A DNA stretch of 64,000 nucleotides from Perkinsela sp. CCAP 1560/9 (Eukaryota; Protista; Euglenozoa: Kinetoplastea), in NCBI GenBank assembly GCA_965644495.1, contig CBFFSA010000004.1, forward strand, positions 1,067,767 through 1,131,766, given 5' to 3'. Below, one piece after another: positions 10,930 to 64,000 of the stretch. A model generated the notes under the pieces. It was given only the letters and a program-made list of their open reading frames with translations, made no database searches and had not been told where the DNA came from. Both the position numbers and the translations under genes were made by a program. How positions within the stretch are numbered: position 1 is the stretch's first letter; each line of letters begins with the position of its first letter.

Positions 10930-11161
10930 AAGGCGCACTTGCTTTTCACGAGTTTATTCTGCGCACCATGGGCTTATAGACTTTACTTGTATCTGATTTC
11001 CTATGTCGATTCAACATAGAACATTGTCCACGGACAGAATCCCCTACACACATACATGAGTTTTTATTACATTTCTCGCATTACAAGAATAATAGCTTCT
11101 TTTCGGATCACTTGTTAGCCAATATTTGTCTGGTTACACAACTACTGCGCTACCCTTGATT

Positions 11162-20255: not shown

Positions 20256-20259
20256 GTTC

Positions 20260-20355
20260 TTAGAGCATTGAGCAGAAAAGAAAGTAAAGGAAAGAAAGGG
20301 AAGTAAGAGGAAGGAAGGAAGTTATGGAAAGCACAAAGGTAAGGGAGAGCGTCGA

Positions 20356-20386
<31 letters not shown>

Positions 20387-20613
20387 TTACTACAAAAAAT
20401 TATACAAAAGTTATACAAATGTATTACTACAAAAGTTATACAAAAGTAATACAAAAGTTATAATACAAAAGTTATAATACAAAAGTTATAATACAAAAGT
20501 TATAATACAAAAGTTATAATACAAAAGTTATAATACAAAAGTTATAGTACAAAAGTTATAATACAAAAGTTATAATACAAAAGTTATAAGGTATAATTAT
20601 AAAATATTTAGAA
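20260..20613. repeat. 354-bp simple-sequence insertion: purine tract, (CTA)n and ~10 copies of a 14-bp minisatellite
   Basis: (CTA)n at ~20357-20392 and TAATACAAAAGTTA x~10 at 20447-20588, flanked by AATGAGTTC direct repeats (20251-20259 and 20614-20622). Confidence 0.85.
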
Positions 20614-41241: not shown

Positions 41242-41480
41242 CCTTATACCGTAAGATGACCGGCCCGCGACAATGGAGTAAGCTCATTAGTTTTCTTCTT
41301 AATATGTAACTTGGGTTATTTGTACCGCAAGCAATCTGCTCGGAGATATGACCTTGTATTTCGTAAAATTGTATCCTTACAAACACGCTTTTTTTGACCC
41401 ACCGACATGTAAGCCTCTTCCTATGTAATTTCTCTAGAACCATATTATTATGGAAAATTGTCAATTCTCCTGTTCATAGC

Positions 41481-44817: not shown

Positions 44818-44860
44818 GTGACTTGTTTTAGAATTTTAGAATAACTTCATCATAAAATAA

Positions 44861-47080
44861 ATTGCGGTGGTTGTACAACTACCGCTCTACCCTCGATTAT
44901 TGGAAAAAAAAAGTGAATAAAAACAGTGAAAATATAAAGAGGAACACAGTAATAAATTTGTTAGACTCTTCGCTAAACGCGGTGGTTGTTTTCAACTTAG
45001 AAGTCACTCATGCTGCGCGCTTCGCGTTGAAAACGCCGCGTTTAACGAAGAGCCTAAAAAAGAAACATCGTCAAAAGATCATAAATAATCTATTTTGGGG
45101 GGTAAAAAAGCTCGATTTTTCGGCGAAAAATGCGAAATTTTAACCCGAATTTGGACAGTTTTTGATGCCTTACCCGTAGGGGCAGGAGGCGAATCTGTCA
45201 AAAAAAAAAGACGTCGCAGAATGGTAGCTGAGGTCCAAAACTCTTAAAATACATTTTAGGAGTCAATTTCGGAAAAATAATATTCTTACTTTTTGTTTGG
45301 TGAAAAAAATGATTTTTTGGTTACCGTTACCCCCCCGCTTACTTAGCCCCCACTTTTTGGCCCAAGACCCGTACTTTGTGGTGAACTTCATTCCTGCAGC
45401 TACGTAGCATTCCTGTAACCGTTATCATTTCCCCCCGGAACGTTAAACCAGACTGTGGTTTAAAATCCCGGTATGACGGCGTCGTCTTCACCGACGTGTG
45501 CACCAAGAACCTTTGTTCATCGATGTTTGTGCGCCATCTGTGTCCCTCCTTGAAGACCACTGGGCGTGACTCTGCCTCGCCTTACCCCGATGCAACGGTC
45601 GGTTGCAGTGCACCCCTCCGGCTGTGTAAAGAGGTGGTAAGTTGTCTGAGAAAATTCCGACACCCCCCTTACTTCACCACACGTCCAGCGACTAAATGTG
45701 GTGAAGGCGACTAAATGTGGGGGAGGCGAAGTAAAGGGGGGGTAACGGTACACCAAAAAATTCGGAAATTTTTAACTTGTCGGACCCCTCCAGCGCGTAG
45801 CAGGGGGGTATCCCCAGGTGGGGGGTGGGGGGGTGGAAAATTATCGCCGCGGCATACACTCTACCACTTCGCCGCGCTCGATTTTGAAAAGCAAAAATTT
45901 CGAAAAAAAATCGCGACGCATGCCCCCTCCCTGGACCCCCCCTAGACCCCCCCCTGCCCCCCCCCCTGGACCCCCCCCTGCACCCACCCTGGACCCCCCC
46001 ATGGACCCCCCATTTTTTTGAATTTTTTTTTCAGTTTTGGACCATCGGGGCCCCTTTTATATTTTTTTCTTCGACATTTTTTCTTCTGTATTATAAACTT
46101 TTTTTCTTCTATTACTGTGTTCCAGTTTATATTTTCTTTTCAAAAATGGGGTCTGGGGGGGCAGGGGGGGCATACGTCGCGAAACTTTTTTTTGATTTTT
46201 TTTCTTTTCAAAGAGTATGCTGCGGCGATGATTTTCCACCCCCCACATTTGGGGGTGACCCCCCCTGGCACGCGCAGGAGTGGTCCGACAAGTTCGAAAT
46301 TATTAAAAATTTTGGGATGACCCAAAAACAAATTTTTGACCAAAAAAAGTAAAAGTATCATTTTTCCAAAATGGACTCCTAAAACGCATTCTGAGAGTTT
46401 GGGAACTCAGCCACCGTTGTACGAAGTTTTTTTCAACAGATTCGCCTTCTACCCCTGTTGATTTTCGAAATCGAGCGTAGGGAAGTGGTAGAGTAGGACG
46501 CGGCGATGACTTTCCACCCCCCCACCAGGGGGTAACCCCCCCTGGTACGCGCGGGAGGGGTCCGACAAGGTCAAAAATTCGGAAATTTTTGGGATGACCA
46601 AAAAAAGTATTTGACCCGAAAAAAAGTAAAAATATTATTTTTCGAAAATCGACTCCTAAACCGTATTTGGAGAGTTTGGGACCCCAGCTACCATTCTGCG
46701 ACGTTTTTTTCGTCAGATTCGCCTCCTACCCCTTCTGGTAAGGCATCAAAAACGGCCTAAATTCGGGTTAAAATTTCGCATTTTTTGCCGAAAAATCGAG
46801 GTTTTCTCCCCAAAAAAATAGATTATTTATGATCTTTTCGCGATTTTTCTTTTTAGGCTCTTCGTTAAACGCGGAGGTAGTTTTCAACGCGAAGCGCGCA
46901 GCATGAGTGACTTCTAAGTTGAAAACAACCACCGCGTTTAACGAAGAGCCTAAAAAAGAAAACCGGTGGTCCAAAAAAACAAGAAAACCCGGTGGTCCAA
47001 AACTGAAAAAAAATCAAAAAAATGGGGTGCCCATGGGGGGGCTTTTTTAAAAAAATGGGGTCGTTTTTTGAATTTTCTCT
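44861..47080. mobile_element. Nest of rearranged non-autonomous rolling-circle units (subfamily A) in both orientations
   Basis: Fixed end ATTGCGGTGGTTG at 44861, long palindromes at ~44961-45060 and ~46851-46957, and internal segments homologous to 11162-11725. Confidence 0.8.
45324..45748. mobile_element. MITE, 425 bp, CCGT-starting TIRs, TA-flanked, nested in a rolling-circle unit
   Basis: TA|CCGTTACCCCCCC..TTACTTAGCC ... GGCGAAGTAAAGGGGGGGTAACGG|TA. The flanks rejoin as the uninterrupted sequence seen at ~11510-11540. Confidence 0.85.
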
Positions 47081-47274
47081 CAGGACCGCTACGGTCAGCT
47101 CGTTTTGAACGAGCAGCTGAAGGGCCGGACTGCAGCTTCCTCCCTCCCCGCTCCTCCGCCGACGAGAAAGGCGGCCACGCGGGCGTGGCAATACCGTTTG
47201 CATATTTTTCTGTTTTTGAAAATTTCTTGATGTGCAAAGTCACGAGGGTATCAAAATTTCTAAAAATGCTGAAA

Positions 47275-47640
47275 CGCTCCAGCGCGTGGGTCGCGCACTG
47301 AGAACCTGTGCCTACCCCTTCCGCAGGATTGTCCAGAGGCAAGGCCCAACTGTGAGCGAATCCCACTTCTGGAGGCAAAGGCCCCAGTTTGCGAGCAAGG
47401 CCCAACTGTGAGCGTAGCCCTGGGACATAATTATATTTTTTGGCGACCCGCGCGCTCCAGCGCGTGGGTCGCGCACTGAGAACCTGTGCCTACCCCTTCC
47501 GCAGGATTGTCCAGAGGCAAAAGGTCCAACTGTGAGCGAAGCCCACGTCTGGAGGCAAAGGCCCCAGTTTGCGAGCAAAACCCAATTGTGAGTGAAGCCC
47601 ACTTCTGGAGGCAAAAGCCCCCGTTTGCGAGCAAGGCCTA
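47275..47640. repeat. Hierarchical GC-rich tandem repeat (~179-bp duplication containing ~60-bp subunits)
   Basis: CGCTCCAGCGCGTGGGTCGCGCACTGAGAACC... at 47275 and 47453; subunit CCCAACTGTGAGCGAA.CCCAC.TCTGGAGGCAAAGGCCCCAGTTTGCGAGCAA x3. Confidence 0.85.
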
Positions 47641-48339
47641 ACCCAATCCATCCAATACAAAATACCGACAAAGTCGGCTAAAACACTTAGTACTTTCACA
47701 TGAAACATTTCCATCTCTATCACCTCCAAATTAGGAGTTTTTGTGCCTATCCTATCCTATCCTATAATACCCCTGCCGGGTAAATGGGTAATTACCCGCA
47801 TTGACAGGTCGACTTAGAAAGCTACATACAGGGGGGTAAATCAGATGCTGCGGGGGGTCTAAAAATTATAAAACCCTTCAAATTTTGGAAAATGACAGCG
47901 CATTCGAGAGCTCTCGCAGAGTTCTAGGTTTTTGCGCTATTTTCACCCCAAAAGAAAACAATTTTGTTTATGGCATTTTTTTAAAGTTTTTTTGCCCCTC
48001 TAAAATTTGCAGTTTTTCCCAAATTTGCTCATTTTTTCGTTTTTTCTCCATTTCGTCTCAGTTTTTGCCGCGAAAGCGATCCCGTTCTATGCAGAACAAA
48101 GGATCTCTCTCCGATAGGGCGTACTCCTCCCCTGGGCACACCAAATATTCACATACAGTAGCAAAAAAACCGTCAGCAAAAAAACCGTTCGAATGTTTCG
48201 GTTTTTTCTTCTTTTGTATAGAGCTATTGATTAAATATCACCGTTGCGCTGGTAATGTGTGCTAGTAGCATGAGTGTCACCTAATAGTACCCGTAGATAG
48301 TTTGCCTCAGTTCGTTCTACCAAAGAAATAAGAATGAAT

Positions 48340-49225
48340 ATTGCGGTGGTTGTAAAACTACCGCTCTACACTCGATTATTGAAAAAAAAGTGAACAAAAA
48401 CAGTGAAAATGTAAAGGGTAACACAGTAATATAATAGAAGAAAAAAATATAAAAGGGGGCTCCGGTGGTCCAAAACTGAAAAAAAAAATTGAAAAAAATG
48501 GGGGGTCTAGGGGGGGGGGTCCAGGGGGGGGGCATGGTCGATCAAATTTTTTCGAAAAAATTAGTTTTCGAAAAAAACCGCAGAAAGGGTAGCCGGGGTC
48601 TTGGCGCGCATTTTCCACCCCCCTACCCGGGGGTGACCCCCCCGCGTATCCGCAGGACGGGTCCGCCAAGTTCGGATTTTTTCGGAAAAATTTTTTCGAA
48701 AAAAAATTCAACTTGGCGAAAAAAATGACAAAAAAAATATTTTTCCAAAATCGTTTCCCCTATTGTATTTTGATAGTTTGGGACCTACACTAGCTTTCTA
48801 CGCAGTTGTTTTCGCAAGGTATCACTTCTTCGAACTGTGGTGCGCCCCTCAAAATGACCCACTTTTGACTAAAAAAGGTGAAAAAGTATTTTTCGGACCT
48901 AAAGGGGCATTTTTGTGTCGAAAGAATGGTATGGTTGGAGTCGCATTCTCTACCCAATACGTTCGGTAGGCTTTCATTCATGCCTGCGAGTGATTTCCCA
49001 CGCGCAAATGTCGGATTTAGTGCTCTGAGAGCAAAAATGTGCGAAAATGACCCCATTTGTACCCGAAATTCGGCTATTTTTGGCTATAATCTTTCCGTTT
49101 TCCAGGCTAAATTTTCTTTTTTAGGCTCTTCGTTAAACGCGGCGGTAGTTTTCAACGCGAAGCGCGCAGCATGAGTGACTTCTAAGTTGAAAGCAACCAC
49201 CGCGTTTAACGAAGAGCCTAAAAAA
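48340..49225 (+). mobile_element. Complete ~885-bp non-autonomous rolling-circle unit (subfamily B), inverted relative to the autonomous element
   Basis: Starts ATTGCGGTGGTTGTAAAACTACCGC, ends in the long palindrome ...CGAAGAGCCTAAAAAA, and is a near-identical reverse complement of 61636-62552. Confidence 0.9.
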
Positions 49226-50648
49226 GAAATAACTCGAAAAATATAACTCGTTAATCACTGCATCCTTCCTAAAATTCTGTACGTAAACTTTTAATATATT
49301 TTTTTATATAATAATTTATTTTAGGCTCTTCGTTAAACGCGGTGGTTGCTTTCAACTTAGAAGTCACTCATGCTGCGCTATTCGCGTTGAAAACTACCGC
49401 CGCGTTTAACGAAGAGCCTAAAAAAGAAAATTGGCCAGGGACGCGGAAGAAAACGGAAGAATTTGAGCCAAAAATAGCCGATGTTTTGGTAAAAATGGGG
49501 TGATTTTTTGTATATAGAGCACTAAAGTCGAGAATGCGACTCCAACCACACGATTCGTACGACTCAAAAAGACCTCTTGGTGTCCAAAAATTACTTTTTC
49601 GCATTTTTTGATCAAAAATGGGACATTTTGGGAGGCGTACCACGGCTTCAAGAAGCGACACCTCGCAAAACCAATGACGTAAAAAGCTAGAATAGGCCAC
49701 GAACTATAAAAATACAATAGGCAAAACAAATTTGGAAAAATATTCTTTTTACCAATTTTTTCGTCAAGTTGAAAATTTTTTCAAAATTTTTTTTCCGAAA
49801 AAATCGGAACTTGACGGACCCGTCTTGCGGATACGAGGGGGGGTCACCCCCGGGTAGGGTATGCCCCCCCCATAGACCCCCCAGTTTTTTCAATTTTTGT
49901 TTTCAATTTTGGACCACCGGATCCCCCTTTTATATTTTTTTCCTTTACGGCGTTTAACGAAGAGCTTAGAAAAGAAAAATTTGACAGGAGAGTAAAAGAA
50001 ACCAGAGGGATAACTCTGGATTTGGTCCAAAAAGAGCCGATAGTTGGGCAAAAATAGGGTTGTTTTTGCATATTTCCGCTCACATGTGTTTTCCTTCGGT
50101 TCGCACGATTTTGAACGAAGCAGGGTGGAGACCTCTTTTTTTGAAAGGCCCTTGAATTCACCCCGGCTTTTGAAGGGGGGGGGATTTACTTCGTGGGTTT
50201 ACTTCTTCGTTTTGATTCATTTGGTTTACGCCAGGGGTGCAGTTAATGCCATGTCGGAACGCTTTTCTGACAGTAAGTTGGATATGCACTAATTCAGTCA
50301 TCAAAAGCATATTTGTTGAATGATCAGGCTAAAAATAGAAGAAGTGATGACTGCAACTGTAGATCTGCTATGTAAATGTAAACATTTTTTTAACAAATTT
50401 AGTTTCAATTGTATTTATTTGAGTTTAGAAAATGCGAAGTTACAAATACTTACAGAGGGTTTCCGAGACACAAAGTAAAACCACAGAAAAACTTTGATGC
50501 GATGAAACGTAAAAAAACGGTGCTGTGGACGAATTTAAGCCGAAAATTTCTCGAAAGAAAAGTGTTTTATTTCCTTCTCCAACCTTCGAATCATGAATTC
50601 AAAATTTTAAACCAACTTTCACTTCCAAACGTCTTCTTACACACTTAT

Positions 50649-50990
50649 TCAGAAAATTAAGTATCTGTTTCTCTTCTTTTTCCCTTTGAAGTAAACGCTC
50701 GATGCGCGCTTCGCTTCTTCCGTAGTGCTAAAACACACGTGCGCCAGTCCTTTTTTTGATACGATTGTTATGCAATCGATTTCACCATACGAAGCGTAAT
50801 GCTTGGTAAGGTCTTCTTTAGTCGTAGAGGAGGGAAGGTGTTCTATTGTGATTGAGCGCTCGTCACGCTCTTCGCGCGCAGAGCGCAAAACGTGTAGAGA
50901 TTCTAAGTAATCATCTCTTTTGCGCTTTGTATCTCTTTCCTTGTCGGAAATGTCGTTACCATTGGTTGATTGATTCTCCGCCGAGGCCAT
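50649..50990 (-). CDS. Small single-RRM protein (113 aa) inside the Helitron-like element
   Basis: DERSITIEHLPSSTTKEDL..HY..YGEI..ITIV..KGLAHVCF.T.EEA..A gives RNP2/RNP1. ATG at 50990; the upstream part of the tracked ORF is repeat-derived. Confidence 0.75.
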   Translation of the reverse strand: MASAENQSTNGNDISDKERDTKRKRDDYLESLHVLRSAREERDERSITIEHLPSSTTKEDLTKHYASYGEIDCITIVSKKGLAHVCFSTTEEAKRASSVYFKGKKKRNRYLIF

Positions 50991-51482
50991 AGTAAATTCA
51001 AAGAAAGTTTTTAAAAAAATCAAGCTGAGTCTAGAAACATTCAACTTAAAAAGCAATACATGAACGTAGAAGTCTTGTTTTTGAAGGGCCTGCCCGGAGG
51101 GCCCTTCGAGAGGGTGCAGACCCGCTGCCGCGGGGGGTGCTTTACCTCGTGACATGTAATTTTGAAGGAAACAAGCTTCTGATAACTTTTTTTGCAGGGC
51201 CCGCCCGGAGCGCCCTTCGAGAGGGTACAGGCCCGCTGCCGCGGTGGGTGCTTTTGAAGCAAACAAGCTTCTGAAATTTCGATAAAAAAAATTGAAAGCA
51301 ATTTTGACGGAGCGTAATTCTGCAGCTATGATGGAGACATTTTTTTTTGGTAGAGGGCGCGTGAGCGTTGGGGTCACTCGCACTTCTTCTGCCGAAGCTG
51401 AAGACGCCGGGCTTGTGACCGGTATCAAGCGTGCTTCCCCCCTAGAGAGGTCTTCCTAAGAAGATCGTTTCAATCTAATTTC

Positions 51483-54400
51483 TTAGAATTGATAAGTCAA
51501 ATCGGTAAGCCGATTTGCTTTTTCCATGGCCGGAAATTTAGGCCTATGGTAACCTGAAGTCAGGTGTGTTCCTGGGCGATCTGTGCCCATGCCAGGGAGC
51601 ACTCGAATATCATCGAGGCATTGTGCCCTGGATATTGCTACTGTGAGCTTGGCGAGTTCCGGTCTCTTGGACCACGCCTTATCATTCAAGTCAAGAATAA
51701 CACCTTTCTTCACGGTGATACCTTGTACTTTGTGATACGTATAGGCAAATCCCAATTCCACTTGAAAGTTTCCTTGGGAAGCCTTATCATGGTGCTGCGC
51801 CTTTTTGGCGTAAAATTCTACACCTGACCCCTTCTCAATGCATTGCATAAAAGAAGGGGCTTTTCGTAGATAACGAACACCATCAATAGTGTCGTATGAC
51901 AAATCGTCTGACACAAGGTCTCTCATTTCAATCACTGTCCCATTCGCAATTTTCATTGTATAAGGAGCAATGTTCTCGGTGATTACACCGGGTGCTCCTT
52001 TTACAAATACAGAAAATGCTTCAGGGTGTGTGTCAATGAGTTTACCTTGGACGTTATCGCCTGTCCATGCGAACAATGGGCAATTGTGACGTCTGGAAAA
52101 ATTTCTTGCCATTGCGACATTAATCTTGTGCCGTTCAATATTTGTTCCAACAATGACAATTGCATTGCGGAACTTTTCTTGGTCCTCAGAGGTAAGAGGT
52201 TTTACCAATTGGATGAACTTCTTCAACCCCTCATTGGGAGCTTTTCGAAGAAGACGCAAGATATCTGAAAATACAGTATCTTGTCGTGCTCGCATTTGCT
52301 GTTTGAGTTCAAACACATACGAGACTTGAAAAATATTCTCAAAAATGGGATTATTACCAAGAGAGCTATCTTCTATGGTAAGAGACGCTCCTTGTACTGG
52401 TCTCAGCTGATAAAAATCTCCAACAAAGAGCATGTTGATGCCTCCATAGGGAAGCTGCTCATTTCCTTTGATTTGCTGCAGTCTAGTGTTGATACAGGCA
52501 AGGAAACACTTGCTGATCATTGACACTTCGTCGACTATGATTAATCGACATTTCTCATACCTTTGTTGGTATGGTAGAAGGCTACTGCTTGAAAGATGTT
52601 TCAAATTTCTTGCAGTAGCCCCTATCGGTATGCAGAGGGAAGCGTGTATTGTGCAACAGTGCAGTACTGATGCGGCGATCCCAGTGGGCGCCATTGCAAT
52701 ACATTGGCTTCCCAGTTCTTGCATTATGAAACGGGAAACTAGACTTTTCCCGGTTCCGGGGCCACCGAGCAGAAACATACATTTCCGCTCGGGGTCTAGT
52801 TTCCCGTTTAGTAAATCTTCAATTTGATTTACGCACTGTTTCTGTGCTTGGTTCAGTTCAATGGAATTGTTGTCTTCGCGCAATATGTAGCTGCGATCGA
52901 ACGTAATCTCTTCGTATTGATTACTGCGAACCAGTGGACGATCCTCATTAAAATGAGCTCTGTCCACTGGTGCACTTGGCTCAGATTGAGCCGAAGTTGC
53001 AAATCGTTCGTTTTGGATCATTTCAGCATAGCGCTCTCGCGCATTTATGACTGAAATATTGGACCTCGTCCTTGTCATTGTCGATGCAAGATCAACATTT
53101 TCTTCAGAGGAGTTCTCAGTAGAACCTCCTAACGCGGCCGTTAAAGCTCGCGTTTGTAGTTCGCAGTATGCATTCTGCTGAACCAATCGCTCTTCATTAA
53201 CCACTGCAGTGTTCTGCTGTGCTTCAAGAGCATCTTGAAGATGAGGTTCAACCTCTCGCACTTCAAGCTCATTTTCGTACGCAATGTTGCGTGCTAATCT
53301 TGCTTCTTCCAGAGTGCAAGCATCTTTGCGTCGATACAAATCTGCCGCGTTCTCTGTATTCTTCGAAGCATGTAAAAGCCGAAGAAAGTTGCACATTATG
53401 TCATACTTTCCAGGCGTATTTATTTTCGCTTCATTGAGAAGCTTTTCAAACCCTTCTAGGGTCATTTCATGGCTCGGTGAGCCTTTCGTCCATGGGGAAA
53501 ACAATGCCACCATGTGTTTCGCTACTCGAAGATGGCTTCGAGCTCGTGCCCCAGGTTCTTTTGAAGAACTCAATATGGGAAAACCTGGTATAGCTGGCAC
53601 AGTGTGCAAAGAGCGCAACTGTTGCTCAACAATATCTCCAGGCTCAAATTCCGGGTGGCCGTCAATGTCCTCAAAGGCGTATCTCCCATTAGCACGACGT
53701 CCGCGACGACGTCTTCGATTTGTCCCTGACTCAAAATCTGAATCATGATCGGGCTCTTCTTGAGCTAGTTCAGCTCTTTTCTTCTTTACGCTGACAATGC
53801 CTGCATAGGAATACAGGTCAAGGTCTTGAAGATCTTCGCCCCTGTGCATGTAACGCACATGGAGTGGTGCAAGAACTGCACAATCATGTTCGGTGATCAT
53901 TAGAGGAGCCTCTAAGATACCGTTGTCGAACTCCATATTAGAGTCTTGTGACGAATCATCGTCACTGATTTCTGGATCTCTGTGATCAGACTCACTTGGG
54001 ATATTTGCCAGGAACTTCATTACACGGTTCATATTGATCCATGTGAAGTTATGGCTCATATACTCGGAGGATTGGCCGAGACAAAAGGCAGTTGCCATTT
54101 CGATTGAAACTTCTATCTTTCGATGTGTCATGTTCGACAATTTCTGTAGAACTAAGCGCGCCATCGGAATGTCAGTTTGCACTCTGTTCTCTGAATTCAG
54201 ACCCATTTGAAGGTGGTCATTGGCTGCGCGAAGTGCTGGTACAATGTACACAGGTGGACCAATGTCCTTGCTCATATATTTTATGAGATATTGCATAATT
54301 TTTATGCCTGGACCTTCGCTCCCAATGAAAACTACACATGTATTGCATCTTACGCAAGCAGTGAGTGTTTCATTGTACGGAACGGTGATGGATCCCCGTT

Positions 54401-57400
54401 TAGTGTGTTGTGTCGGGTCCTGGTTATTGCGCAGAAGCACAATCAGAGACCTTTCATCAAGTACTGGCCAAATGGTATCATTTTTAATCGGCCGTGTTGG
54501 AGCCTTGAGCCGGAATTCCGGTTGTCCGGATTCATCCATCTGAACCTCAACCTCTCTAACTTCCGTTTCATTTTCATGAAGTACGGATGGAATGCCATAT
54601 CGGCATTTGTTCTTGCCAATGTTTCCTTTCATTTTGAAACACATGGGTCTGTGACCAACGTGCTGCTGAACATCAACAGCACATTTGGCCACATGTTCCC
54701 TGAAATAATCATCCTTTTCATCAGGAATGATATGTAGACCTCCGCGATACATCTTTGAGTAGTCGAGCGTTGCATGGCCGTAAAGCTCCTTACTGATCCT
54801 TTGCGCCCACTCGGGCAGATCAGCGCGCATCGTCGTACCCAAAGACTTCGCGAGACCATCGTGCTCCTTCACAATGTGAATTAATTCGGAGACGTAATGT
54901 GGACTAAGATTCGTCCATAGCACACTATGAAAGTGTAGCGCACCTCTTTTCTGGCATTCTACAACACCAAAAAATGCTCGAGGGCGACCAAAGAGGCCTT
55001 CAAGAACGTCACGTTCCTTCTTTACCTCATCTACATTCGACATTCCGTACAATTCGGTAAGAAGAGTACGGATTTGCCGTTCGAAAATGCTAGTGGATCT
55101 GACAGGATTCCCTTGCACAAGCTCAGATCGCTTGAGAAGGTTGGCCCGCATTTCCTGCATTTTTTCGCTCTCATCATTTGTGATGATTCTTAGAGCTAGA
55201 ACGTTATCGTTCATGTTTGGACTCACTGTGATCCAGTAACTTGGCAGTCCGTATCGCCTGTATAAGGCGTAGATCTGGCCTTGTGATGCCTTTCGCTTTG
55301 CTGGCGAAAAGGGTATCGTTTTTGCGCATACTTGCACAAATGGCAGAAACTTTGTTTCCAGAAGTTTCGCCTCGGAACTGTTTGGGTTCCTTATAGCCTG
55401 TTGCACAATGTGATAGAAAGCATCAGCATTGCAAAAATTCATGAGGCTTCTGTGCATATCTTTGTTATACTTCAGATTTTGCACTACTGCTGATGAGACT
55501 GCACGGCGCCGAAGCACATCGTAGCAGTAAAATATGAATCCAGCATTCTTTGCAAATCGGGAATCCGATTGCTCTAGAATTTCCTTGATTTCATATAGTT
55601 CAAACGTTGAACCCTTAAAAGGGTACTTTTGCATCAGCGTCGGAAATGCTCCGAGCAAGATGTTTTCCATGTCGGTATACTCATTGAGTAAACCTTCTTT
55701 TTGTTTCAGTTGCATCGCCACGGCATGCGTAATTTGCGCACCCGCCGGCGCATTGCTTACAGGGCTGTGATCAGTTACAAAAGATCGTGTGATCTCACCG
55801 CGAGGATCGCGATGTAACGTATCGGAAGCCACTGCTTGGGTGACCATACTGTTGATGGCGTTTTCACCCTCCTGGGAAACAGATCTATCCCAAAGATGTG
55901 AGACAACGTCTCTACAATGTTGCTCGGTAACAACGTTGATCTTTCCTTCCTCTTTCAGTTGAGCATACACGTGGTTATGCTCACAGAGGAAGTGTACCCA
56001 GGTGTTCAGGGTCTCTGATTTCACGCCGAATATGCCACTCAGCTGTGCAGAACATAGTCTTTGACTACGTTTCGTTCTCCGTTCGTTGGCTATCCAAACA
56101 ATTTGGATGTTCTTAATCGCGCCCTCGAGATCAGGAACTCTTTCGAGTTGCAAGAGCTCAAGGGTTTCGCGTGCTGTAGCCGTCACGTGTCCAGTGAACT
56201 TCGTGTCTGGCCTTAAGGATGCGGCATATGCGCCACCTTTCCTATGTACACTGATGATTGTGCAGTGTAAAAACACCTTTTGAAGAAGGATCTCTTCTAC
56301 CAGCGTGGGTACTGGAAGGTGATTTGTAGAAGGTTGTTCTACTGGACCGCGGGGAATTCTCCCTTTTTTGTCCATTATTCTTTGATCCCTTGCACAAAGT
56401 TGCGCTTCGGGATTCGGAAGGTCACTTTCGAGAAGAATAACTTTACAAGAATCACAACTTGTGATACGTTGGTCGTCGTTCATTCTCTTTTTGTACCTTT
56501 TCATGCACTCTTCTTGAGCTTCCGTACTGACTGAAAAATCTTCCAAAGGAAGACGATCAATGTAGGAAGTCTCATAGAAGTATTTTAGTGCGTCTTTTGG
56601 ATTGCGCTCAATGTCAAAACGTGTTCGACGTGAGCCATCTCCATTGACTTCGTATGTGTCAAAATTGACAATACATTTCGCGATGCAACATCGTTCAAGC
56701 CAGTACCGAAGTTCATTGGCTGAAGATTCTTTGCATATTTCGTTTGTGTGAAAGATGGTATTTTCACACATCTGCATGATAGCATATGCTGCACTGTCAA
56801 TAGTGCTAGCATTCGTCACATTCGTGACAGTTGCTTGATTCAAAATTGAAACAATTTCATTTTCAAGAGAGGGACTCGTAATAAACGTATAAACGTTCTT
56901 TTCACCCTTCTTTTTCAAGGAAACAAGGACCCATATGGGCCCCGATGATTCATCTGTTTCCAAGTATGTAAATATGTGTAAACCCACACGGTTCCTTGAA
57001 GTGAACTTGTCACATTCATTGAATGGACATACTTTCACAGGAAATCGTCGTGTGTTAATGGTTTTACATAATACATTTTCCACAAAGTAGAGAATCTCTA
57101 CTGATTTTAGTGGATGATCTAGCCTTGTGAATGCTTCTTTGGTACGCTTTTCTTGTGGATACAAAGTGAGGGGTATAACCCCCACTTCGCCTTTTTCCAG
57201 TGAAGCTTCGAGCCACTTCCAGAGTGATAAAAGTTTATCACGTTCTGTCAGTTTCGGCCAATCACGGTCTTGCGTGATAGTGTAGGCTATGGCTCCCAGG
57301 GAGAGCTCACCTTCATCGTTTCCTACTAAAGGAACTGGCGTAGTAGCCATGTTTCCAATATTGTAGACGGTTCGAATTGCCGCTATCTGTGTTTCCATAG

Positions 57401-58223
57401 AAGCTGCGCAATTATATGTGAACACTCGTCGTTTAGTCAGACATACCATGGCGAGAGAATCGCCATTGCCTTTAACGTAAACGACGTTATGTCCATCACG
57501 ATGTCTCTGAATAGAGCATCTTTTATCTCCATCGCTTTGGAGGGTTTCATCACAAACAATGTGTGAATTGATGAGAATATTCTCAATCAGTTGAAAAGAT
57601 GTGAGTGTTAGCGTGGAGCATTGCTTCACACGTTCCAGCTCATCATCCTGCGATACTGCATGAGCTCTGTTGCGCTCAGCTTGTGTGATCCGAAGTCGAA
57701 AAGCCCGAGCTTCAGCATGCCGCGGATGGCGGTAAAAATGCTTTTGAAGCCCCTTAAACGTGAACATTTGTTCGGTAGCGCACAAAGTGCATTTGAACTT
57801 GTTCTGTTCGCAGGGGAGGGCAAATTCGATCCAGTCGACTTTTGTTTGAACATAACGTGTATGCTCACTTGACACCAAATGGTATTCATCTGCCGGGATA
57901 ATACCCGTTGTTCCTTGAATCTGTGCGAAATACGTACATACTTCGCACAGAGGAACATTCATATCAGTTAGGAGCACCTGTGAAGGGTGTCCCATACTGA
58001 GTATGTGTCGCATCATAGATTTGACACTTAGTTTGCGTATGGCGTGCAGTGCGCATACATACGATCCATTAGAGAAACTTACGTGAAGCTCCCATTTCGG
58101 ATGTAGATACGCCATTTCCCGATGTTTCAGAGAATTCGCGTGATTAGTATTCACCATGACTGGCGGGAATCTTGCAAGATAGCAAAGTAATTGAAAGGAA
58201 TACATAAATGCATTCCTTCGCAA
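51483..58223 (-). CDS. RepHel transposase: HUH endonuclease (Rep) plus PIF1-family SF1B helicase
   Basis: Rep motifs LPSYWITVSPN (~55230), VVECQKRGALHFHSVLW (~54935), YLIKYMSK (~54280). Helicase motifs GGPGTGKS (~52750), MAPTGIAA, TIHASL, IIVDEVSM, FVGDFYQLRPV, QQMR, AYTYHKVQGITV, VAISRA. Confidence 0.95.
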   Translation of the reverse strand: MRRNAFMYSFQLLCYLARFPPVMVNTNHANSLKHREMAYLHPKWELHVSFSNGSYVCALHAIRKLSVKSMMRHILSMGHPSQVLLTDMNVPLCEVCTYFAQIQGTTGIIPADEYHLVSSEHTRYVQTKVDWIEFALPCEQNKFKCTLCATEQMFTFKGLQKHFYRHPRHAEARAFRLRITQAERNRAHAVSQDDELERVKQCSTLTLTSFQLIENILINSHIVCDETLQSDGDKRCSIQRHRDGHNVVYVKGNGDSLAMVCLTKRRVFTYNCAASMETQIAAIRTVYNIGNMATTPVPLVGNDEGELSLGAIAYTITQDRDWPKLTERDKLLSLWKWLEASLEKGEVGVIPLTLYPQEKRTKEAFTRLDHPLKSVEILYFVENVLCKTINTRRFPVKVCPFNECDKFTSRNRVGLHIFTYLETDESSGPIWVLVSLKKKGEKNVYTFITSPSLENEIVSILNQATVTNVTNASTIDSAAYAIMQMCENTIFHTNEICKESSANELRYWLERCCIAKCIVNFDTYEVNGDGSRRTRFDIERNPKDALKYFYETSYIDRLPLEDFSVSTEAQEECMKRYKKRMNDDQRITSCDSCKVILLESDLPNPEAQLCARDQRIMDKKGRIPRGPVEQPSTNHLPVPTLVEEILLQKVFLHCTIISVHRKGGAYAASLRPDTKFTGHVTATARETLELLQLERVPDLEGAIKNIQIVWIANERRTKRSQRLCSAQLSGIFGVKSETLNTWVHFLCEHNHVYAQLKEEGKINVVTEQHCRDVVSHLWDRSVSQEGENAINSMVTQAVASDTLHRDPRGEITRSFVTDHSPVSNAPAGAQITHAVAMQLKQKEGLLNEYTDMENILLGAFPTLMQKYPFKGSTFELYEIKEILEQSDSRFAKNAGFIFYCYDVLRRRAVSSAVVQNLKYNKDMHRSLMNFCNADAFYHIVQQAIRNPNSSEAKLLETKFLPFVQVCAKTIPFSPAKRKASQGQIYALYRRYGLPSYWITVSPNMNDNVLALRIITNDESEKMQEMRANLLKRSELVQGNPVRSTSIFERQIRTLLTELYGMSNVDEVKKERDVLEGLFGRPRAFFGVVECQKRGALHFHSVLWTNLSPHYVSELIHIVKEHDGLAKSLGTTMRADLPEWAQRISKELYGHATLDYSKMYRGGLHIIPDEKDDYFREHVAKCAVDVQQHVGHRPMCFKMKGNIGKNKCRYGIPSVLHENETEVREVEVQMDESGQPEFRLKAPTRPIKNDTIWPVLDERSLIVLLRNNQDPTQHTKRGSITVPYNETLTACVRCNTCVVFIGSEGPGIKIMQYLIKYMSKDIGPPVYIVPALRAANDHLQMGLNSENRVQTDIPMARLVLQKLSNMTHRKIEVSIEMATAFCLGQSSEYMSHNFTWINMNRVMKFLANIPSESDHRDPEISDDDSSQDSNMEFDNGILEAPLMITEHDCAVLAPLHVRYMHRGEDLQDLDLYSYAGIVSVKKKRAELAQEEPDHDSDFESGTNRRRRRGRRANGRYAFEDIDGHPEFEPGDIVEQQLRSLHTVPAIPGFPILSSSKEPGARARSHLRVAKHMVALFSPWTKGSPSHEMTLEGFEKLLNEAKINTPGKYDIMCNFLRLLHASKNTENAADLYRRKDACTLEEARLARNIAYENELEVREVEPHLQDALEAQQNTAVVNEERLVQQNAYCELQTRALTAALGGSTENSSEENVDLASTMTRTRSNISVINARERYAEMIQNERFATSAQSEPSAPVDRAHFNEDRPLVRSNQYEEITFDRSYILREDNNSIELNQAQKQCVNQIEDLLNGKLDPERKCMFLLGGPGTGKSLVSRFIMQELGSQCIAMAPTGIAASVLHCCTIHASLCIPIGATARNLKHLSSSSLLPYQQRYEKCRLIIVDEVSMISKCFLACINTRLQQIKGNEQLPYGGINMLFVGDFYQLRPVQGASLTIEDSSLGNNPIFENIFQVSYVFELKQQMRARQDTVFSDILRLLRKAPNEGLKKFIQLVKPLTSEDQEKFRNAIVIVGTNIERHKINVAMARNFSRRHNCPLFAWTGDNVQGKLIDTHPEAFSVFVKGAPGVITENIAPYTMKIANGTVIEMRDLVSDDLSYDTIDGVRYLRKAPSFMQCIEKGSGVEFYAKKAQHHDKASQGNFQVELGFAYTYHKVQGITVKKGVILDLNDKAWSKRPELAKLTVAISRAQCLDDIRVLPGMGTDRPGTHLTSGYHRPKFPAMEKANRLTDLTYQF

Positions 58224-59845
58224 TGTTGTGCTACATGCTTCGTTATAGCCTCTTTTTCAAGAGGTGTTTCAGAACACCCAGGCAGTTTGCACTGGTATAT
58301 GTTTTCTGTTTCAAGGACGTTTTCTGTCCAAAATGCGTACCACTGCTTGTGCTCAGAGCACTTCGCAGGATTGTGCTTCTTGGGCACACGCCCCGCATCA
58401 AAGAATGAACAAGCTTCACAGCTTTGTTCACTTGTTTTCATATGCTTTTTTTCGACGTGCTTTCTTGCAGCGCCGAGGCTCATCACTTCACCGGAACAAG
58501 CGTCCGCAACACACTTGTAACCGGATTCTGTCCCTGCGCTTGCGTGAGCTATGGGAAGCTCGTGCCATAGTTCGAACAGTTGCTGTTCGTGTTCGTGGCT
58601 GATACTCGAAATATGCTCTCGAGTTTTCAAGATAGGACGCTGTCCATGCATACTCGAAAAAAAGGAGCATGCTTCACAAATGTCGTGATCTCCGCGCCCA
58701 TGTTCGAAAACATGTTTGCGCATGTAGTAGTACATAAATGTGTACGACGAAGGGTTTGCTTTACCCCGTGATTCTGCACATTTTGTGCACCGAAAGCCTG
58801 CAGACATGGTACCTTGCACCTCAAAGTCCATCCACATGTCGTACATCTCCTTCTCGGTTTTGTGATTCGCACTCGAGAGATGCTCTCGAGTACGTCTTAT
58901 GGGGGGTTTCCCTTGCAACTCCTCGAAGAAGGAGCACTCTTTGCAATGGGAATGATCCCCGCGCCCATGTTCGAAAACATGTTTGCGCATGTCATCATAC
59001 TTGAAAGTACGATGTTCAGGGTTTTGATCGCCCTGTGCTGTGGCACATTTCGTGCACCGAAAGCCTGCAGACACGGTACCTTGCACCTCAAGGTCCATCC
59101 ACATGTCGTACATCTCCTTCTCGGTTTTGTGATTCGCACTCGAGAGATGCTCTCGAGTACGTCTTATGGGGGGTTTCCCTTGCAACTCCTCGAAGAAGGA
59201 GCACTCTTTGCAATGGGAATGATCCCCGCGCCCATGTTCGAAAACATGTTTGCGCATGTCATCATACTTGAAAGTACGATGTTCAGGGTTTTGATCGCCC
59301 TGTGCTGTGGCACATTTCGTGCATGTAAAGCCATTGACAATGCTTCCTTCAATTTGAAGGACTTTCCACGCGTTAAAAATCTCTTTTTCACGCTTGTGTT
59401 TCACACGCTCGTCGTGCTTTTGTACGCTCAAAACGGGGGGTTTTCCCATGAGCTCTTGGAAGAACGAACAAGGTTCACAAATGATATGCAACCCTTTTAA
59501 ATGTTCATTTACGTGCCGCTTCATCAGGGGAGCTGTCAATTCCACCCGAATGTTCGCGTTAGCACATTCTCGGCAGGTGTAAAATTCACCTTCTTCAGCA
59601 ACATGCTGTTGCCATAGCTCGTATATTTGAGCTGAGCTTTTATGTGCTTTGCTAGCACTGTGATTAAGGGTCATGCGCACCCTTTTCTTTCCTTTCTTTC
59701 TTTGAAAGAAAGTGCAGCATTCGCAGTCGCGATATGCTTCGCCCAGAGCTTTGTTAGAGCTCAGTTGGCTTCCCCCACCCCCGGCCCCAGCAAGCGACAC
59801 CTCCAACGACGCCGACGACACGGACCACGACGAATCAGAAGACAT
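58151..59845 (-). CDS. Cys/His zinc-finger repeat ORF; probable N-terminal part of the RepHel protein
   Basis: Five or more modules CxxCSFF...GxPP...H...H / CxxC...MRKHVxEH. The last module is completed only by the first residues of the RepHel frame. Confidence 0.85.
   Translation of the reverse strand: MSSDSSWSVSSASLEVSLAGAGGGGSQLSSNKALGEAYRDCECCTFFQRKKGKKRVRMTLNHSASKAHKSSAQIYELWQQHVAEEGEFYTCRECANANIRVELTAPLMKRHVNEHLKGLHIICEPCSFFQELMGKPPVLSVQKHDERVKHKREKEIFNAWKVLQIEGSIVNGFTCTKCATAQGDQNPEHRTFKYDDMRKHVFEHGRGDHSHCKECSFFEELQGKPPIRRTREHLSSANHKTEKEMYDMWMDLEVQGTVSAGFRCTKCATAQGDQNPEHRTFKYDDMRKHVFEHGRGDHSHCKECSFFEELQGKPPIRRTREHLSSANHKTEKEMYDMWMDFEVQGTMSAGFRCTKCAESRGKANPSSYTFMYYYMRKHVFEHGRGDHDICEACSFFSSMHGQRPILKTREHISSISHEHEQQLFELWHELPIAHASAGTESGYKCVADACSGEVMSLGAARKHVEKKHMKTSEQSCEACSFFDAGRVPKKHNPAKCSEHKQWYAFWTENVLETENIYQCKLPGCSETPLEKEAITKHVAQHCEGMHLCIPFNYFAILQDSRQSW
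58790..59323 (-). repeat. Near-perfect 267-bp (89-aa) in-frame tandem duplication
   Basis: CTKCATAQGDQNPEH...QGT[VM]SAGFR occurs twice with very few substitutions. Confidence 0.95.
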
Positions 59846-59972
59846 GAGAAGAATAATAGTATGAATAAAAAAGCGCTAAACAGTGAAAAAAATGTATGAA
59901 CAAAAAAATTCGAAGCACAAAAATAAGAACATGTGATTTTCATCTCATTTTAGAGGATCATTTTTTAGAGGA

Positions 59973-62900
59973 TCTTAGAAGTCACTCATGCTGCGCGCTT
60001 CGCGTTCAAAACTACCACCGCGTTTAACGAAGAGCCTAAAAAAGAAACTTCGGCCTGGACAGCTAAAGTAAAACAAAGATTATAGCCAAAAATAGCCGAT
60101 TTTAGGGTAAAATTTTTAGGGTAAAATTTTTGGGTATTTTTGCTCTCAGAGCGCTAAATCTGACATTTGCGTGTGAGAAATCACTCGTAGGTGTGAATGG
60201 AAGCCTACTGAACGTATTGGGTATAGAATACGACTCCAACCACACCATTCTTTCGACATAAAAAGACCCCTTTGGGTTCGAAAATTACTTTTCCGCAATT
60301 TTTGGTCAAAAATGGGCCATTTTGGGAGGCGTGCCACGGCTAGAAGATGGGGTAACTTGCGAAAACAACGGTGTAGATGGCTAGTATAGGTCCTAAACTC
60401 TCAAAATACAATAGCGAAAAAAAATTTGAAAAAATATTTTTTTTACCATTTTTTCCGCCAAGTTGAATTTTTTCTCAATTTTTTTTTTTGAAAAAATCTA
60501 AACTTGGCGGACCCGTCCTGCGGATACGCGGGGGGGTCACCCCCGGGTAGTGGGGTGGAAAATGCGCGCCAAGACCCCGGTACCCCTTCTGCGGTTTTGT
60601 TTCGAAAATTTGCTCGACCATGACCCCCCCCCCCCTGGACCCCCCATTTTTTTCAATTTTGGACCACCGGAGCCCCCTTTTATATTTTTTTCCTTTATTA
60701 TATTACTGTGTTCCTCTTATATTTTCACTGTTTTTGTTCACATTTTTTCAACGTTGAAAACTACCGCCGCGTTTAACGAAGAGCCTGAAAAAGAAAATTT
60801 GGCCTGTAAAGCTGAAGAAAACGGAAAGATTATAGCCAAAAATAGCCGAATTTCGGGCAAAAATGGGGTGATTTTCGCGTATTTTCTCAGAGCACTAAAT
60901 CCGACATTTGCGCGTGGGAAATCACTCGCAGGCATGAATGAAAGCCTACCGAACGTATTGGGTAGAGAATGCGACTCCAACCATACCATTCTTTCGACAC
61001 AAAAATGCCCCTTTAGGTCCGAAAAATACTTTTTCACCTTTTCTAGTCAAAAATGGGTCATTTTGGGGGGCGCACCACGGTTCGAAGAAGTGATACCTTG
61101 CGAAAACAACTGCGTAGAAAGCTAGTGTAGGTCCCAAACTATCAAAATACAATAGGGGAAACGATTTTGGAAAAATATTTTTTTTGTCATTTTTTTCGCC
61201 AAGTTGAAATTTTTTTCAAAAAATTTTTTCCGAAAAAATCCGAACTTGGCGGACCCGTCATGCGGATACGCGGGGGGGTCACCCCCGGGTAGGGGGGTGG
61301 AAAATGCGCGCCAAGACCCCGGCTACCCTTTCTGCGGTTTTTTTTTCGAAAACTAATTTTTTCGAAAAAATTTGCTCGACCATGCCCCCCCCCCCTGGAC
61401 CCCCCCCCTGGACCCCCCCCCTGGACCCCCCCCCTGGACCCCCCCCCTGGACCCCCCCCATGGACCCCCCATTTTTTTCAAATTTTTTTTCAGTTTTGGA
61501 CCACCGGAGCCCCCTTTTATATTTTTTTCTTCTATTATATTACTGTGTTCCCCTTTATATTTTCACTGTTTTTGTTCACTTTTTTTTCAATAATCGAGTG
61601 TAGAGCGGTAGTTTTACAACCACCGCAATAATATTTTCTTTTTTAGGCTCTTCGTTAAACGCGGTGGTTGCTTTCAACTTAGAAGTCACTCATGCTGCGC
61701 GCTTCGCGTTGAAAACTACCGCCGCGTTTAACGAAGAGCCTAAAAAAGAAAATTTAGCCTGGAAAACGGAAAGATTATAGCCAAAAATAGCCGAATTTCG
61801 GGTACAAATGGGGTCATTTTCGCATATTTTTGCTCTCAGAGCACTAAATCCGACATTTGCGCGTGGGAAATCACTCGCAGGCATGAATGAAAGCCTACCG
61901 AACGTATTGGGTAGAGAATACGACTCCAACCATACCATTCTTTCGACACAAAAATGCCCCTTTAGGTCCGAAAAATACTTTTTCACCTTTTTTAGTCAAA
62001 AATGGGTCATTTTGGGGGGCGCACCACAGTTCGAAGAAGTGATACCTTGCGAAAACAACTGCGTAGAAAGCTAGTGTAGGTCCCAAACTATCAAAATACA
62101 ATAGGGGAAACGATTTTGGAAAAATATCTTTTTTGCCATTTTTTTCGCCAAGTTGAAATTTTTTTCAAAATTTTTTTTCCGAAAAAATCCGAACTTGGCG
62201 GACCCGTCATGCGGATACGCGGGGGGGTCACCCCCGGGTAGGGGGGTGGAAATTGCGCGCCAAGACCCCGGCTACCCTTTCTGCGGTTTTTTTTCGAAAA
62301 CTAATTTTTTCGAAAAAATTTGCTCGACCATGACCCCCCCCCCTGGACCCCCCCCCTGGACCCCCCCCCTGGACCCCCCCCATGGACCCCCCATTTTTTT
62401 CAATTTTTTTTTTCAGTTTTGGACCACCGGAGCCCCCTTTTATATTTTTTTCTTCTATTATATTACTGTGTTCCTCTTTATATTTTCACTGTTTTTGTTC
62501 ACTTTTTTTTCAATAATCGAGTGTAGAGCGGTAGTTTTACAACCACCGCAATCTTTTTTAGGGCTCTTCGTTAAACGCGGTGGTTGCTTTCAACTTAGAA
62601 GTCACTCATGCTGCGCGCTTCGCGTTGAAAACTTCCACCGCGTTTAACGAAGAGCCTAAAAAAGAAAATTTAGCCTGGAAAACGGAAAGAATATAGCCGA
62701 AAATAGCCGAATTTCGGGTACAAATGGGGTCATTTTCGAATATTTTTGCTCTCAGAGCACTAAATCCGACATCTGCGCGTGGGAAATCACTCGCAAGGCA
62801 TGAATGAAAGCCTACCGAACGTATTGGGTAGAGAAATACGACTCCAACCATACCATTCTTTCGACACAAAAATGCCCTTTAGGTCCCGAAAATACTTTTT

Positions 62901-63492
62901 CACCTTTTTAGTCAAAAATGGGTCATTTTGAGGGGCGCACCACAGTTCGAAGAAGTGATACCTTGCGAAAACAACTGCGGAGAAAGCTAGTGGAGGTCCC
63001 AAACTATCAAAATACAATAGGGGAAACGATTTTGGAAAAATATTTTTTTTGTCATTTTTTTCGCCAAGTTGAAATTTTTTTCGAAAAAATTGTTCCGAAA
63101 AATCCGAACTTGGCGGACCCGTCCTGCGGATACGCGGGGGGGTCACCCCCCGGGTAGGGGGGTGGAAAATGCGCGCCAAGACCCCGGCTACCCTTTCTGC
63201 GGTTTTTTTTCGAAAACTAATTTTTTCGAAAAAATTTGATCGACCATGCCCCCCCCCCCCTGGACCCCCCCCCTGGACCCCCCCCCTGGACCCCCCCCTG
63301 GACCCCCCCCCTGGACCCCCCCCATGGACCCCCCATTTTTTTCAAAAAAATTTTCAGTTTTGGACCACCGGAGCCCCCTTTATATTTTTTTCTTCTATTA
63401 TATTACTGTGTTCCTCTTTATATTTTCACTGTTTTTGTTCACTTTTTTTTCAATAATCGAGTGTAGAGCGGTAGTTTTACAACCACCGCAAT
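59973..63492 (-). repeat. Head-to-tail array of four ~0.8-0.94-kb terminal/non-autonomous units
   Basis: Units at ~59973-60750 (diverged, truncated), 60751-61629, 61636-62552 and 62553-63492, each with a variable (GGACCCCCCCCT)n tract. Confidence 0.92.
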
Positions 63493-64000
63493 TTATATTA
63501 TGAGATATGATTTGTTTGTTTTGTTTAGAGATTTCATTTATTTAGTTTGGTATAGTGACACTCCTTCTCTAACCTTTTTATTGCGCCCGCCCACCAACCC
63601 CCAACCACTTCGCGGAGTTGGCGGACGGGATGCCCATGGGAGTTTGGCATAAAATTTTTAAATGCACCACGAGATTCACTAGCTACTATCCGGAAACTAT
63701 CCCGAAGGAACCAAAGTGCAGGACACTAGAAGTCTACGCATGGAAATTTAAGGGGCTAATATCGGGTCAAATGCCCGGAAGGGGTTATAATTTTCATTGT
63801 TCTTTTCCCCGAAAGGGGGTTGTAATTGAATCATGTAATAAAAGCTACAATATGTATTCTGAAAATTTACATATTTACTGATTACTTACTTGTAGAATCT
63901 TTTTCCTTTACGCGTTTTTTGTTACCATGCGTTCCCAGCGACTTCGCGTGCCGGCGAACCCAGGACATGAGCGAGACCGCAGCCCTAAGCGAACACGTCC

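Follow-up and report, generated by a model that had tools for sequence, protein, structure and literature searches.

Helitron-like elements (HLEs) fall into two groups. HLE1 elements have TC...CTRR ends and an A|T target, whereas HLE2 elements target T|T and carry a 3' stem-loop and short inverted repeats; a DUF6570 domain upstream of the Rep domain has been proposed as an HLE2 marker (PMC11417382). Helitron2 elements have no endonuclease, hairpins at both ends, and an asymmetric inverted repeat whose 3' member lies 20–40 bp inside (PMC5148889, PMC4067079). One residue of Rep motif 2 is diagnostic, being L in Helitrons and S in Helentrons (PMC4067079). Here we compare with these systems an element found in a 64,000-nucleotide stretch of the kinetoplastid Perkinsela sp. 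CCAP 1560/9 (contig CBFFSA010000004.1, positions 1,067,767–1,131,766 of the forward strand). The whole stretch is referred to as the window. The element encodes a fused Rep-helicase protein (RepHel).

Trypanosomatids have been described as devoid of class II elements. Among 57 of them, no DNA transposon was found and earlier Helitron calls were judged false positives; Merlin elements were noted in Bodo and Perkinsela (PMC12278014). Helitron-like open reading frames (ORFs) are mentioned in Diplonema (PMC10161547). Literature searches on Perkinsela and Prokinetoplastina brought up no further Helitron report, and a looser one on Bodo saltans and Euglenozoa brought up none among the papers listed. 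Within the literature searched, kinetoplastids are described as lacking Helitrons, and a Helitron in one of them is unreported.

Window positions 49319–61629 very probably constitute an HLE2/Helitron2-type Helitron-like element resident in the nuclear genome of a Prokinetoplastina-like kinetoplastid. On the sequence evidence, the element belongs to a genuine, recently active Helitron2-type family, with a master-like intact copy on contig C8 and a frame-shifted copy in the window. An earlier note on this window had proposed a Rep and PIF1 element of the Helitron class together with a non-autonomous family in a kinetoplastid; the domains, shared ends, empty site and host genes described below bear this out.

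Extent of the element and its intact sibling

A six-frame search of the 21-Mb assembly reveals a second full-length copy on contig C8, at approximately 151110–163973. The window and C8 copies share 99.7% identity, read in gene sense from window position 61629 down to 49319, and their flanks are unrelated past both positions. Because the homology ends at these two points and the flanks differ, the element is delimited as 49319–61629. The earlier note had extended the system over 49319–63492. One element does lie there, but it stops at 61629, and the last two units are separate. The element and its principal parts are as follows.

49319–61629, minus strand (gene-sense strand): autonomous-type Helitron2-like element of 12,311 bp, delimited by comparison with the C8 copy
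61605–61629, minus strand: left terminal sequence (LTS) carrying the 10-nt motif GCGGTGGTTG, with ATT before a hairpin (9-bp stem, 4-nt loop)
49319–49432, minus strand: right terminal sequence (RTS), a palindrome of 114 nt whose arms measure ~40 bp, with an A-run tail, from folding and repeat search
51483–58223, minus strand: RepHel ORF of 2246 amino acids, from Pfam domains and motifs
58165–58175, minus strand: 1-bp difference, TT in the window versus TTT in C8, splitting the ORF of the window copy near 58170

The C8 copy contains a single, intact open frame of 2965 amino acids counted from the first Met. The window ORF corresponds to the C-terminal three quarters of this protein. The window copy is also 534 bp shorter than the C8 copy, a difference equal to two fewer 89-residue Cys/His modules. 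The remaining ~15 RepHel loci detected in the six-frame search are truncated or contain stop codons. The window copy, its frame split by the 1-bp deletion, may itself be non-autonomous.

A Rep domain of the HUH/two-tyrosine type followed by a PIF1-family superfamily 1 (SF1) helicase in one protein is the general hallmark of Helitrons, and RepHel has this architecture. Its DUF6570 domain spans residues 631–756 (window 55956–56333; E = 2.9e-11, 44.4 bits against a cut-off of 24.3). The Helitron_like_N domain, of the HUH and two-tyrosine type, follows at residues 882–1102 (54918–55580; E = 2.1e-21), and the PIF1 helicase at residues 1790–1983 (52275–52856; E = 5.9e-25). All three Pfam matches exceed the curated cut-offs. 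The Rep motifs are YWITVS (residues 996–1001), RGALHFH (the HUH motif, 1093–1099) and YLIKY (the two-tyrosine motif, 1312–1316). The helicase contains Walker A and Walker B motifs, with GGPGTGKS (Walker A) at 1820–1827 and DEVSM at 1898–1902. The HUH, two-tyrosine and Walker motifs are intact in the window protein; the 2246-residue minus-strand ORF with three HUH-Rep motifs and a complete PIF1 helicase is as first described.

PIF1 helicases in the PDB match RepHel with E-values of up to 5e-24 and align to ~40 residues before the stop codon. No Pfam match to a C-terminal endonuclease (Exo_endo_phos) was found in RepHel. Since the helicase alignment comes within ~40 residues of the stop, there is no room for such a domain. 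The 700-residue linker between Rep and the helicase matches no Pfam family.

Termini and target site

The left end is precise. ATT and the following hairpin are identical in all 37 distinct copies, and the preceding base is near-random (T in 16, A in 15, C in 3 and G in 3). The LTS hairpin folds at −8 kcal/mol, with a z-score of −4. The right end is dominated by the palindrome, which folds at −38.9 kcal/mol (z −9.3) in the window element. The terminal palindromes of the family fold at −39 to −46 kcal/mol, with z-scores of about −9 to −10 against shuffled sequences. The 3' arm of the RTS carries CAACCACCGC, the inverted partner of the LTS motif. The motif GCGGTGGTTG occupies nucleotides 4–13 of the left end, and its complement lies 27–36 nt from the 3' end, inside the stem-loop and not before it. 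The element ends read 5' (A)TTGCGG... and 3' ...GAGCCT plus an A-run.

The tail that follows the RTS is a prefix, of variable length, of an A-rich 11-mer. Right-end junctions are A|T in 32 of 36 distinct cases; two of the other four clearly extend into a longer palindrome arm and are not true ends. At the 32 junctions, the bases after the tail are ATT (15), ATA (14) and ATG (3). An A|T target thus fits all 32, and T|T is possible in 15. Fragments that possess a left end and lack a right end also occur. The precise left end, the ragged right end and the left-only fragments fit a process that begins at the left end and stops imprecisely at the palindrome, running in the same direction as RepHel.

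At three loci (window 11130–11186, L055 ~6430–6490, and L038 ~550–610), a partial left end of ~35 nt directly precedes a complete one. The joins fall at one of two internal ATT triplets of CTCGATTATTG, which suggests that an ATT within the left end itself is a preferred nick or target site.

The only matches in an Rfam scan of 44000–64000 were to models of plant microRNA precursors, among them those at 49136–49420 and 46843–46963, with E-values down to 4e-23 and less than half of the gathering scores. These matches were rejected as generic artefacts of long perfect hairpins on the palindromes.

A young non-autonomous family with an empty site

The ends of the 12.3-kb element are shared by short units of the 914-bp class. 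Genome-wide, searching with the full unit gave 940 first-look candidates, and searching with the 255 bp of its left end gave 751. Full-length units of 96–99% identity number in the dozens and are spread over many contigs, including those of Mb scale. Twenty-one solo or paired copies that were fetched have the same two ends and unrelated, AT-rich flanks (37% GC vs 44.5% for the window). The mean pairwise divergence among 24 unit copies is 2.3%. Hundreds of derivatives ~2% apart with sharp, shared ends agree with the recent activity that had been claimed for the non-autonomous family.

A unit matches the left 878 bp of the element at 93% and the element's right-end region at 84–88%, and the palindrome is nearly identical. 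The unit is thus a deletion derivative of a close relative of the element. Units of 899, 912 and 927 bp are set apart by C-rich repeat units of 13 nt.

One paralogous empty site was identified. Locus L047 (contig C64) is occupied; at L057 (contig C60) its two flanks are contiguous, and the breakpoint coincides to the base with the two ends of the insertion. In gene sense the empty site reads CCTT-ATT-TGT; apart from an ambiguity of 3 nt, the target is not duplicated. The unit inserted at A|T or, expressed differently, immediately 5' of ATT; taken by itself, the empty site fits T|T as well as A|T. Insertion without duplication, seen at this one site, and shared asymmetric ends are general properties of Helitrons. 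The genome-wide unit search and empty-site comparison that had been proposed thus gave hundreds of matches and one precise empty site.

Several members of the family accompany the element in the window.

61635–62552, minus strand: non-autonomous element of the 914-bp class, head-to-tail with the autonomous-type element across a 5-bp spacer
62553–63492, minus strand: second non-autonomous element, whose RTS directly abuts the LTS of the 61635–62552 unit
48340–49229, plus strand: non-autonomous element in opposite orientation, its RTS facing the RTS of the autonomous-type element with 89 bp between
44861–45066, plus strand: 96-bp LTS fragment (44861–44957) fused to an RTS palindrome; this may be a micro-element of 206 bp or a pair of nested fragments
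11162–11360, plus strand: 200-bp fragment containing an LTS, within the array of host genes, with a second partial LTS ahead of it
59974–61629, minus strand: two partial unit-like internal repeats (unit positions 40–875 and 69–914), located between the LTS and the start of the ORF and shared with the C8 copy

The units at 61635–62552 and 62553–63492 are missing at the C8 locus and are separate non-autonomous insertions. In head-to-tail neighbours, the right tail meets the next left end directly or within 5 bp. The earlier note had described the gene as flanked by ~0.9-kb units. The hairpin-ended units are real, as are their inverted and dispersed copies, but they are not flanks in the manner of a long terminal repeat (LTR). 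LTR-like direct repeats were rejected on two grounds: the two ends of the element differ, and the units are deletion derivatives carrying both ends.

The palindrome loop at 44861–45066 is flipped relative to the 914-bp units, and would be a 'flop' hairpin if this is a micro-element. Left-end fragments and a palindrome also occur at L059 1–520, in an order unlike that at 44861–45066. Every unit contains an array of 12–13-nt C-rich repeats, G-rich in gene sense (45912–46024, 61378–61483, 62326–62405 and 63243–63347), and the copy number, 2 to 5, fixes the 899/912/927-bp classes. These arrays, near a gene for a PIF1-type helicase, are possible formers of G-quadruplexes or i-motifs.

Accessory parts of the element

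Three further features are found on the gene-sense strand of the element.

58151–59845, minus strand: N-terminal ORF of 564 amino acids with zinc-finger-like repeats (89-residue Cys/His modules), continuous with RepHel in C8
50649–50990, minus strand: small accessory gene with an RRM domain, 113 amino acids from the first Met (Pfam RRM_1, 2.9e-6)
51371–51441, minus strand: twister-P1-like motif, 42 nt past the RepHel stop and before the RRM gene

The zinc-finger array matches no Pfam family. In at least six further copies, an RRM gene of 96–99% identity follows the RepHel end at a distance of 0.5–0.9 kb. Diverged RRM paralogues (50–69%) occur elsewhere in the genome, one of them adjoining an older copy on C4. 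A protein search with the RRM protein returned a same-species copy and no close relative beyond the source species. The twister-P1-like motif scores 24.4 bits, below the gathering score of 67.2, with an E-value of 0.009 in a 701-nt search; it surfaced in this search and was missed by the broad Rfam scan of 44000–64000. The twister-like core CCGGUCACAAGCCCGG is retained in the older subfamily copy L012 (3377–3404). Upstream of the start codon, the gene-sense strand contains T-rich tracts followed by AG, which could act as a spliced-leader acceptor.

Relatives and origin of the family

A HMMER search of 1.84 billion cluster representatives identified full-length relatives of 26–31% identity and short fragments of 37–44%. 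Fragments with 85–97% identity come from ERZ24900291, an ENA assembly that agrees with contig C10 at 99.5% over 4.6 kb. The source of that assembly appears to be the same or a nearly identical organism. A word-indexed protein search gave three weak matches, the best at 33%, none from a kinetoplastid; the sole match with a named organism is fungal, at 23%.

The genome contains a second Helitron-like lineage, detected on C1, C2 and C5 by a Pfam-model search and ~24% identical to the present family (family A). Its loci (family B, HLE2) each contain DUF6570, Helitron_like_N and PIF1.

C1:2626500–2636499: L059
C2:926000–935999: L060
C5:667000–676999: L061

An AKAP95-type zinc-finger match is found at the N terminus of family B. 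In a FastTree phylogeny of the DUF6570-Rep region, family B joins environmental sequences with high local support, and not family A. Family A forms a long, poorly placed orphan branch, most of whose checked neighbours carry DUF6570.

Recent arrival of family A by horizontal transfer, which the earlier note had held possible, is rather unlikely compared with an old presence in the lineage, with observations on either side. All scored family-A copies are shallowly diverged (dS, the synonymous divergence, ≤ 0.14), the closest relatives are environmental sequences, and no Helitron has been reported from other kinetoplastids, observations that speak for a recent transfer. Against it, no donor-like relative above 33–44% exists among ~15 billion proteins. 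The genome also holds older, decayed subfamilies with 76–90% amino acid identity and RRM paralogues with 50% identity, as well as a second HLE2 family that is 24% identical and not a sister of family A, and Helitron-like ORFs are mentioned for a diplonemid. The ratio of nonsynonymous to synonymous divergence (dN/dS) between copies is 0.6–1.1, which is neutral decay after insertion and uninformative on origin.

On contig ctg3595l of ERZ24900291 (L055), ORFs matching DDE_Tnp_4 (weakly) and HTH_Tnp_Tc3_2 lie near a decayed RepHel, at 4666–5226, 8066–9226 and 19674–20525. The same organism appears to harbour further families of DNA transposons.

Residence in a kinetoplastid genome

The element follows a one-strand array of ~25 ORFs that includes ordinary eukaryotic genes. 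The ATP synthase alpha subunit of the array is 89% identical to that of the free-living prokinetoplastid PhM-4 and to a transcript of MMETSP0161, a sample that we take to be an amoeba carrying Perkinsela. Identity is 81–82% to Bodo and Trypanosoma and 70% to Diplonema. By these comparisons, the neighbouring genes are kinetoplastid and Prokinetoplastina-like.

Could the element come from another organism, such as the amoeba host, prey or a contaminant, and have been misassembled onto kinetoplastid DNA? It lies at the very end of contig C4, which terminates at window base 64000, and no read or contig bridges its junction with the host array; the public runs consist of short contigs that break at repeats. 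Yet unit copies are found at many positions within the Mb-scale contigs C1, C2, C3 and C5, a fragment sits between kinetoplastid genes of the array, and the C8 copy is internal to an 800-kb contig. Residence in the genome rests on these three placements. In addition, four samples of the source organism hold the family, and the summed contig depth of the unit, which is not a copy number, is far above that of neighbouring unique sequence. Misassembly of foreign DNA is very improbable.

Likewise very improbable, and already largely refuted, is the alternative that the Helitron gene landed in an array of 0.9-kb units that had no connection with it and were a satellite or hairpin repeat of the host: tandem unit arrays do adjoin the gene, and units lie, satellite-like, at the starts of the small contigs C14, C32 and C69, but the unit ends are the element ends, unit-like ends and internal parts recur in the C8 copy between flanks that are unique on both sides, and dozens of solo units, one of them with a precise empty site, have identical sharp ends in unrelated flanks.

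Besides the unit matches at the starts of these three contigs, C4 ends ~500 bp past the last unit, and the family probably ranks among the chief causes of breaks in the assembly. Another repeat family, of 68–80-nt units with two copies 100% identical, occupies 47275–47656, between the host array and the Helitron, and the flank of the solo unit at L035 also matches it. The host ORF at 41394–42599 (plus strand) contains an RF-1 domain (4.9e-13).

Comparison with described Helitron groups

The assignment to the HLE2/Helitron2 group without an apurinic/apyrimidinic (AP) endonuclease is largely right. The HLE2 marker DUF6570 is present in the element and in most of its checked relatives, and the termini are of the Helitron2 kind, each bearing a hairpin, with an inverted repeat that is asymmetric; the protein has no endonuclease. 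The earlier note had argued from RGxLHxH, LFxPW and the missing AP endonuclease. The last of these stands, and DUF6570 adds to it. The diagnostic residue of motif 2 (RGALHFH) is A, neither the L of Helitrons nor the S of Helentrons, and so the motif cannot place the element alone; DUF6570 does place it.

Helitron2 of Chlamydomonas and FoHeli1/2 of Fusarium are the nearest counterparts. As in these elements, RepHel has DUF6570 and no AP endonuclease, each terminus has a hairpin, and the terminal inverted repeat is asymmetric, its 3' member lying 20–40 bp inside; many short non-autonomous derivatives, the absence of target duplication, and a T-rich or AT-rich target are also shared. The element differs from them in several respects. 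Its target is A|T (3' flank ATT, ATA or ATG) instead of TTTT|T/C or TNAT|T. Its 10-nt inverted repeat lies inside a 114-nt terminal palindrome, and its 3' end is ragged. It possesses the long N-terminal array of 89-residue Cys/His modules, the downstream RRM gene and the twister-like motif. Finally, its protein is less than 33% identical to any full-length relative found.

The proto-Helentron of Phytophthora infestans likewise has an HLE2-type RepHel in which no endonuclease is seen, within a large element (12–14 kb), as well as A/T insertion, a 5' TT under the A|T convention, and a stem-loop near the 5' end. The present element lacks its 3' CTAG, has a giant 3' palindrome, and carries an RRM gene rather than SET/TIR. 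Subterminal inverted repeats together with a 3' palindrome link it to Helentrons and their HINE/DINE-1 derivatives, as do the tandem repeats or microsatellites inside non-autonomous copies, the clustering and the high copy number. Unlike Helentrons, it has a target that extends beyond TT. Helentron identity was rejected on the lack of a C-terminal AP endonuclease and on motif 2, which has A rather than the S of RGSPHxH.

Canonical Helitrons (HLE1), such as Helraiser, also have a fusion of HUH/two-tyrosine Rep and PIF1, an A|T target, no target duplication, a 3' hairpin as likely terminator and tandem arrays. Helraiser (PDB 7lcc) matches the helicase part only (E = 1.5e-7), and similarity to its Rep is undetectable by phmmer. 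Canonical status, which calls for a 5' TC and for a 3' CTRR preceded by a hairpin 10–12 nt upstream, was rejected since 5' TC and 3' CTRR are both absent and motif 2 has A rather than L. That the element is an HLE1 or a Helentron after all deserves almost no credence: the target, the lack of duplication and a general Rep motif-2 pattern that suits both groups speak for it, against the absent HLE1 ends, the DUF6570 domain, a likeness to Helraiser confined to the helicase, and an ORF that stops ~40 residues past the helicase alignment with no endonuclease domain.

Several points weigh against an HLE2/Helitron2-type element resident in this genome. The inverted repeat, at 10 nt, is shorter than the 12–16 nt usual for HLE2, and the junctions do not follow the T|T target rule of that group. 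The class placement comes from DUF6570 and the end architecture, the FastTree phylogeny having been built from sequences without HLE1 or HLE2 labels. The empty-site evidence is a single site, and transposition by way of circles is a prediction from the sequence. The window copy itself is frameshifted, and the element stands at a contig end, its join to the host array not independently bridged, as described above.

Proposed mechanism

A mechanism can be proposed from the structure of the ends and from what is known of Helraiser and IS91-type elements. Rep would nick the gene-sense strand at the ATT of the left end, and the helicase would then unwind the duplex 5' to 3'. Termination would be signalled, imprecisely, by the palindrome, and this would account for the ragged tail. 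The released strand would be circularized and then joined into a target AT. A resident left end, itself a nick site for Rep, may serve as the target; alternatively, termination may be bypassed. Either event would suffice to produce head-to-tail arrays.

The features of the family can also be read jointly, and more tentatively, as those of a kinetoplastid-adapted HLE2 lineage with its own tool kit. The RRM protein would take the single-strand-binding role of the RPA-like genes of plant Helitrons. A twister ribozyme would separate the RepHel and RRM messages under polycistronic transcription. Rep would nick N^ATT at its own left end and in targets, so that resident left ends would be preferred and arrays would build up. 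Together with the second HLE2 family, the lineage would represent the first functional Helitron system of the Kinetoplastea and would occupy a few percent of the genome. Such a combined reading is possible but doubtful.

Implications

The defined ends, the intact sibling, the empty site and hundreds of young derivatives extend the host range of Helitrons to Kinetoplastea. They suggest that DNA transposons, absent from trypanosomatids, were retained or acquired by early-branching kinetoplastids. Kinetoplastid genomes contain many PIF1 paralogues, and the assumption has been that none of these stems from a Helitron, which makes the finding a practical issue. For the Helitron field, the element combines an HLE2 protein with an A|T target, a giant palindrome with a ragged end, an RRM gene, a twister-like motif and a very divergent sequence. 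This combination is useful for tracing how end recognition evolved between HLE1 and HLE2.

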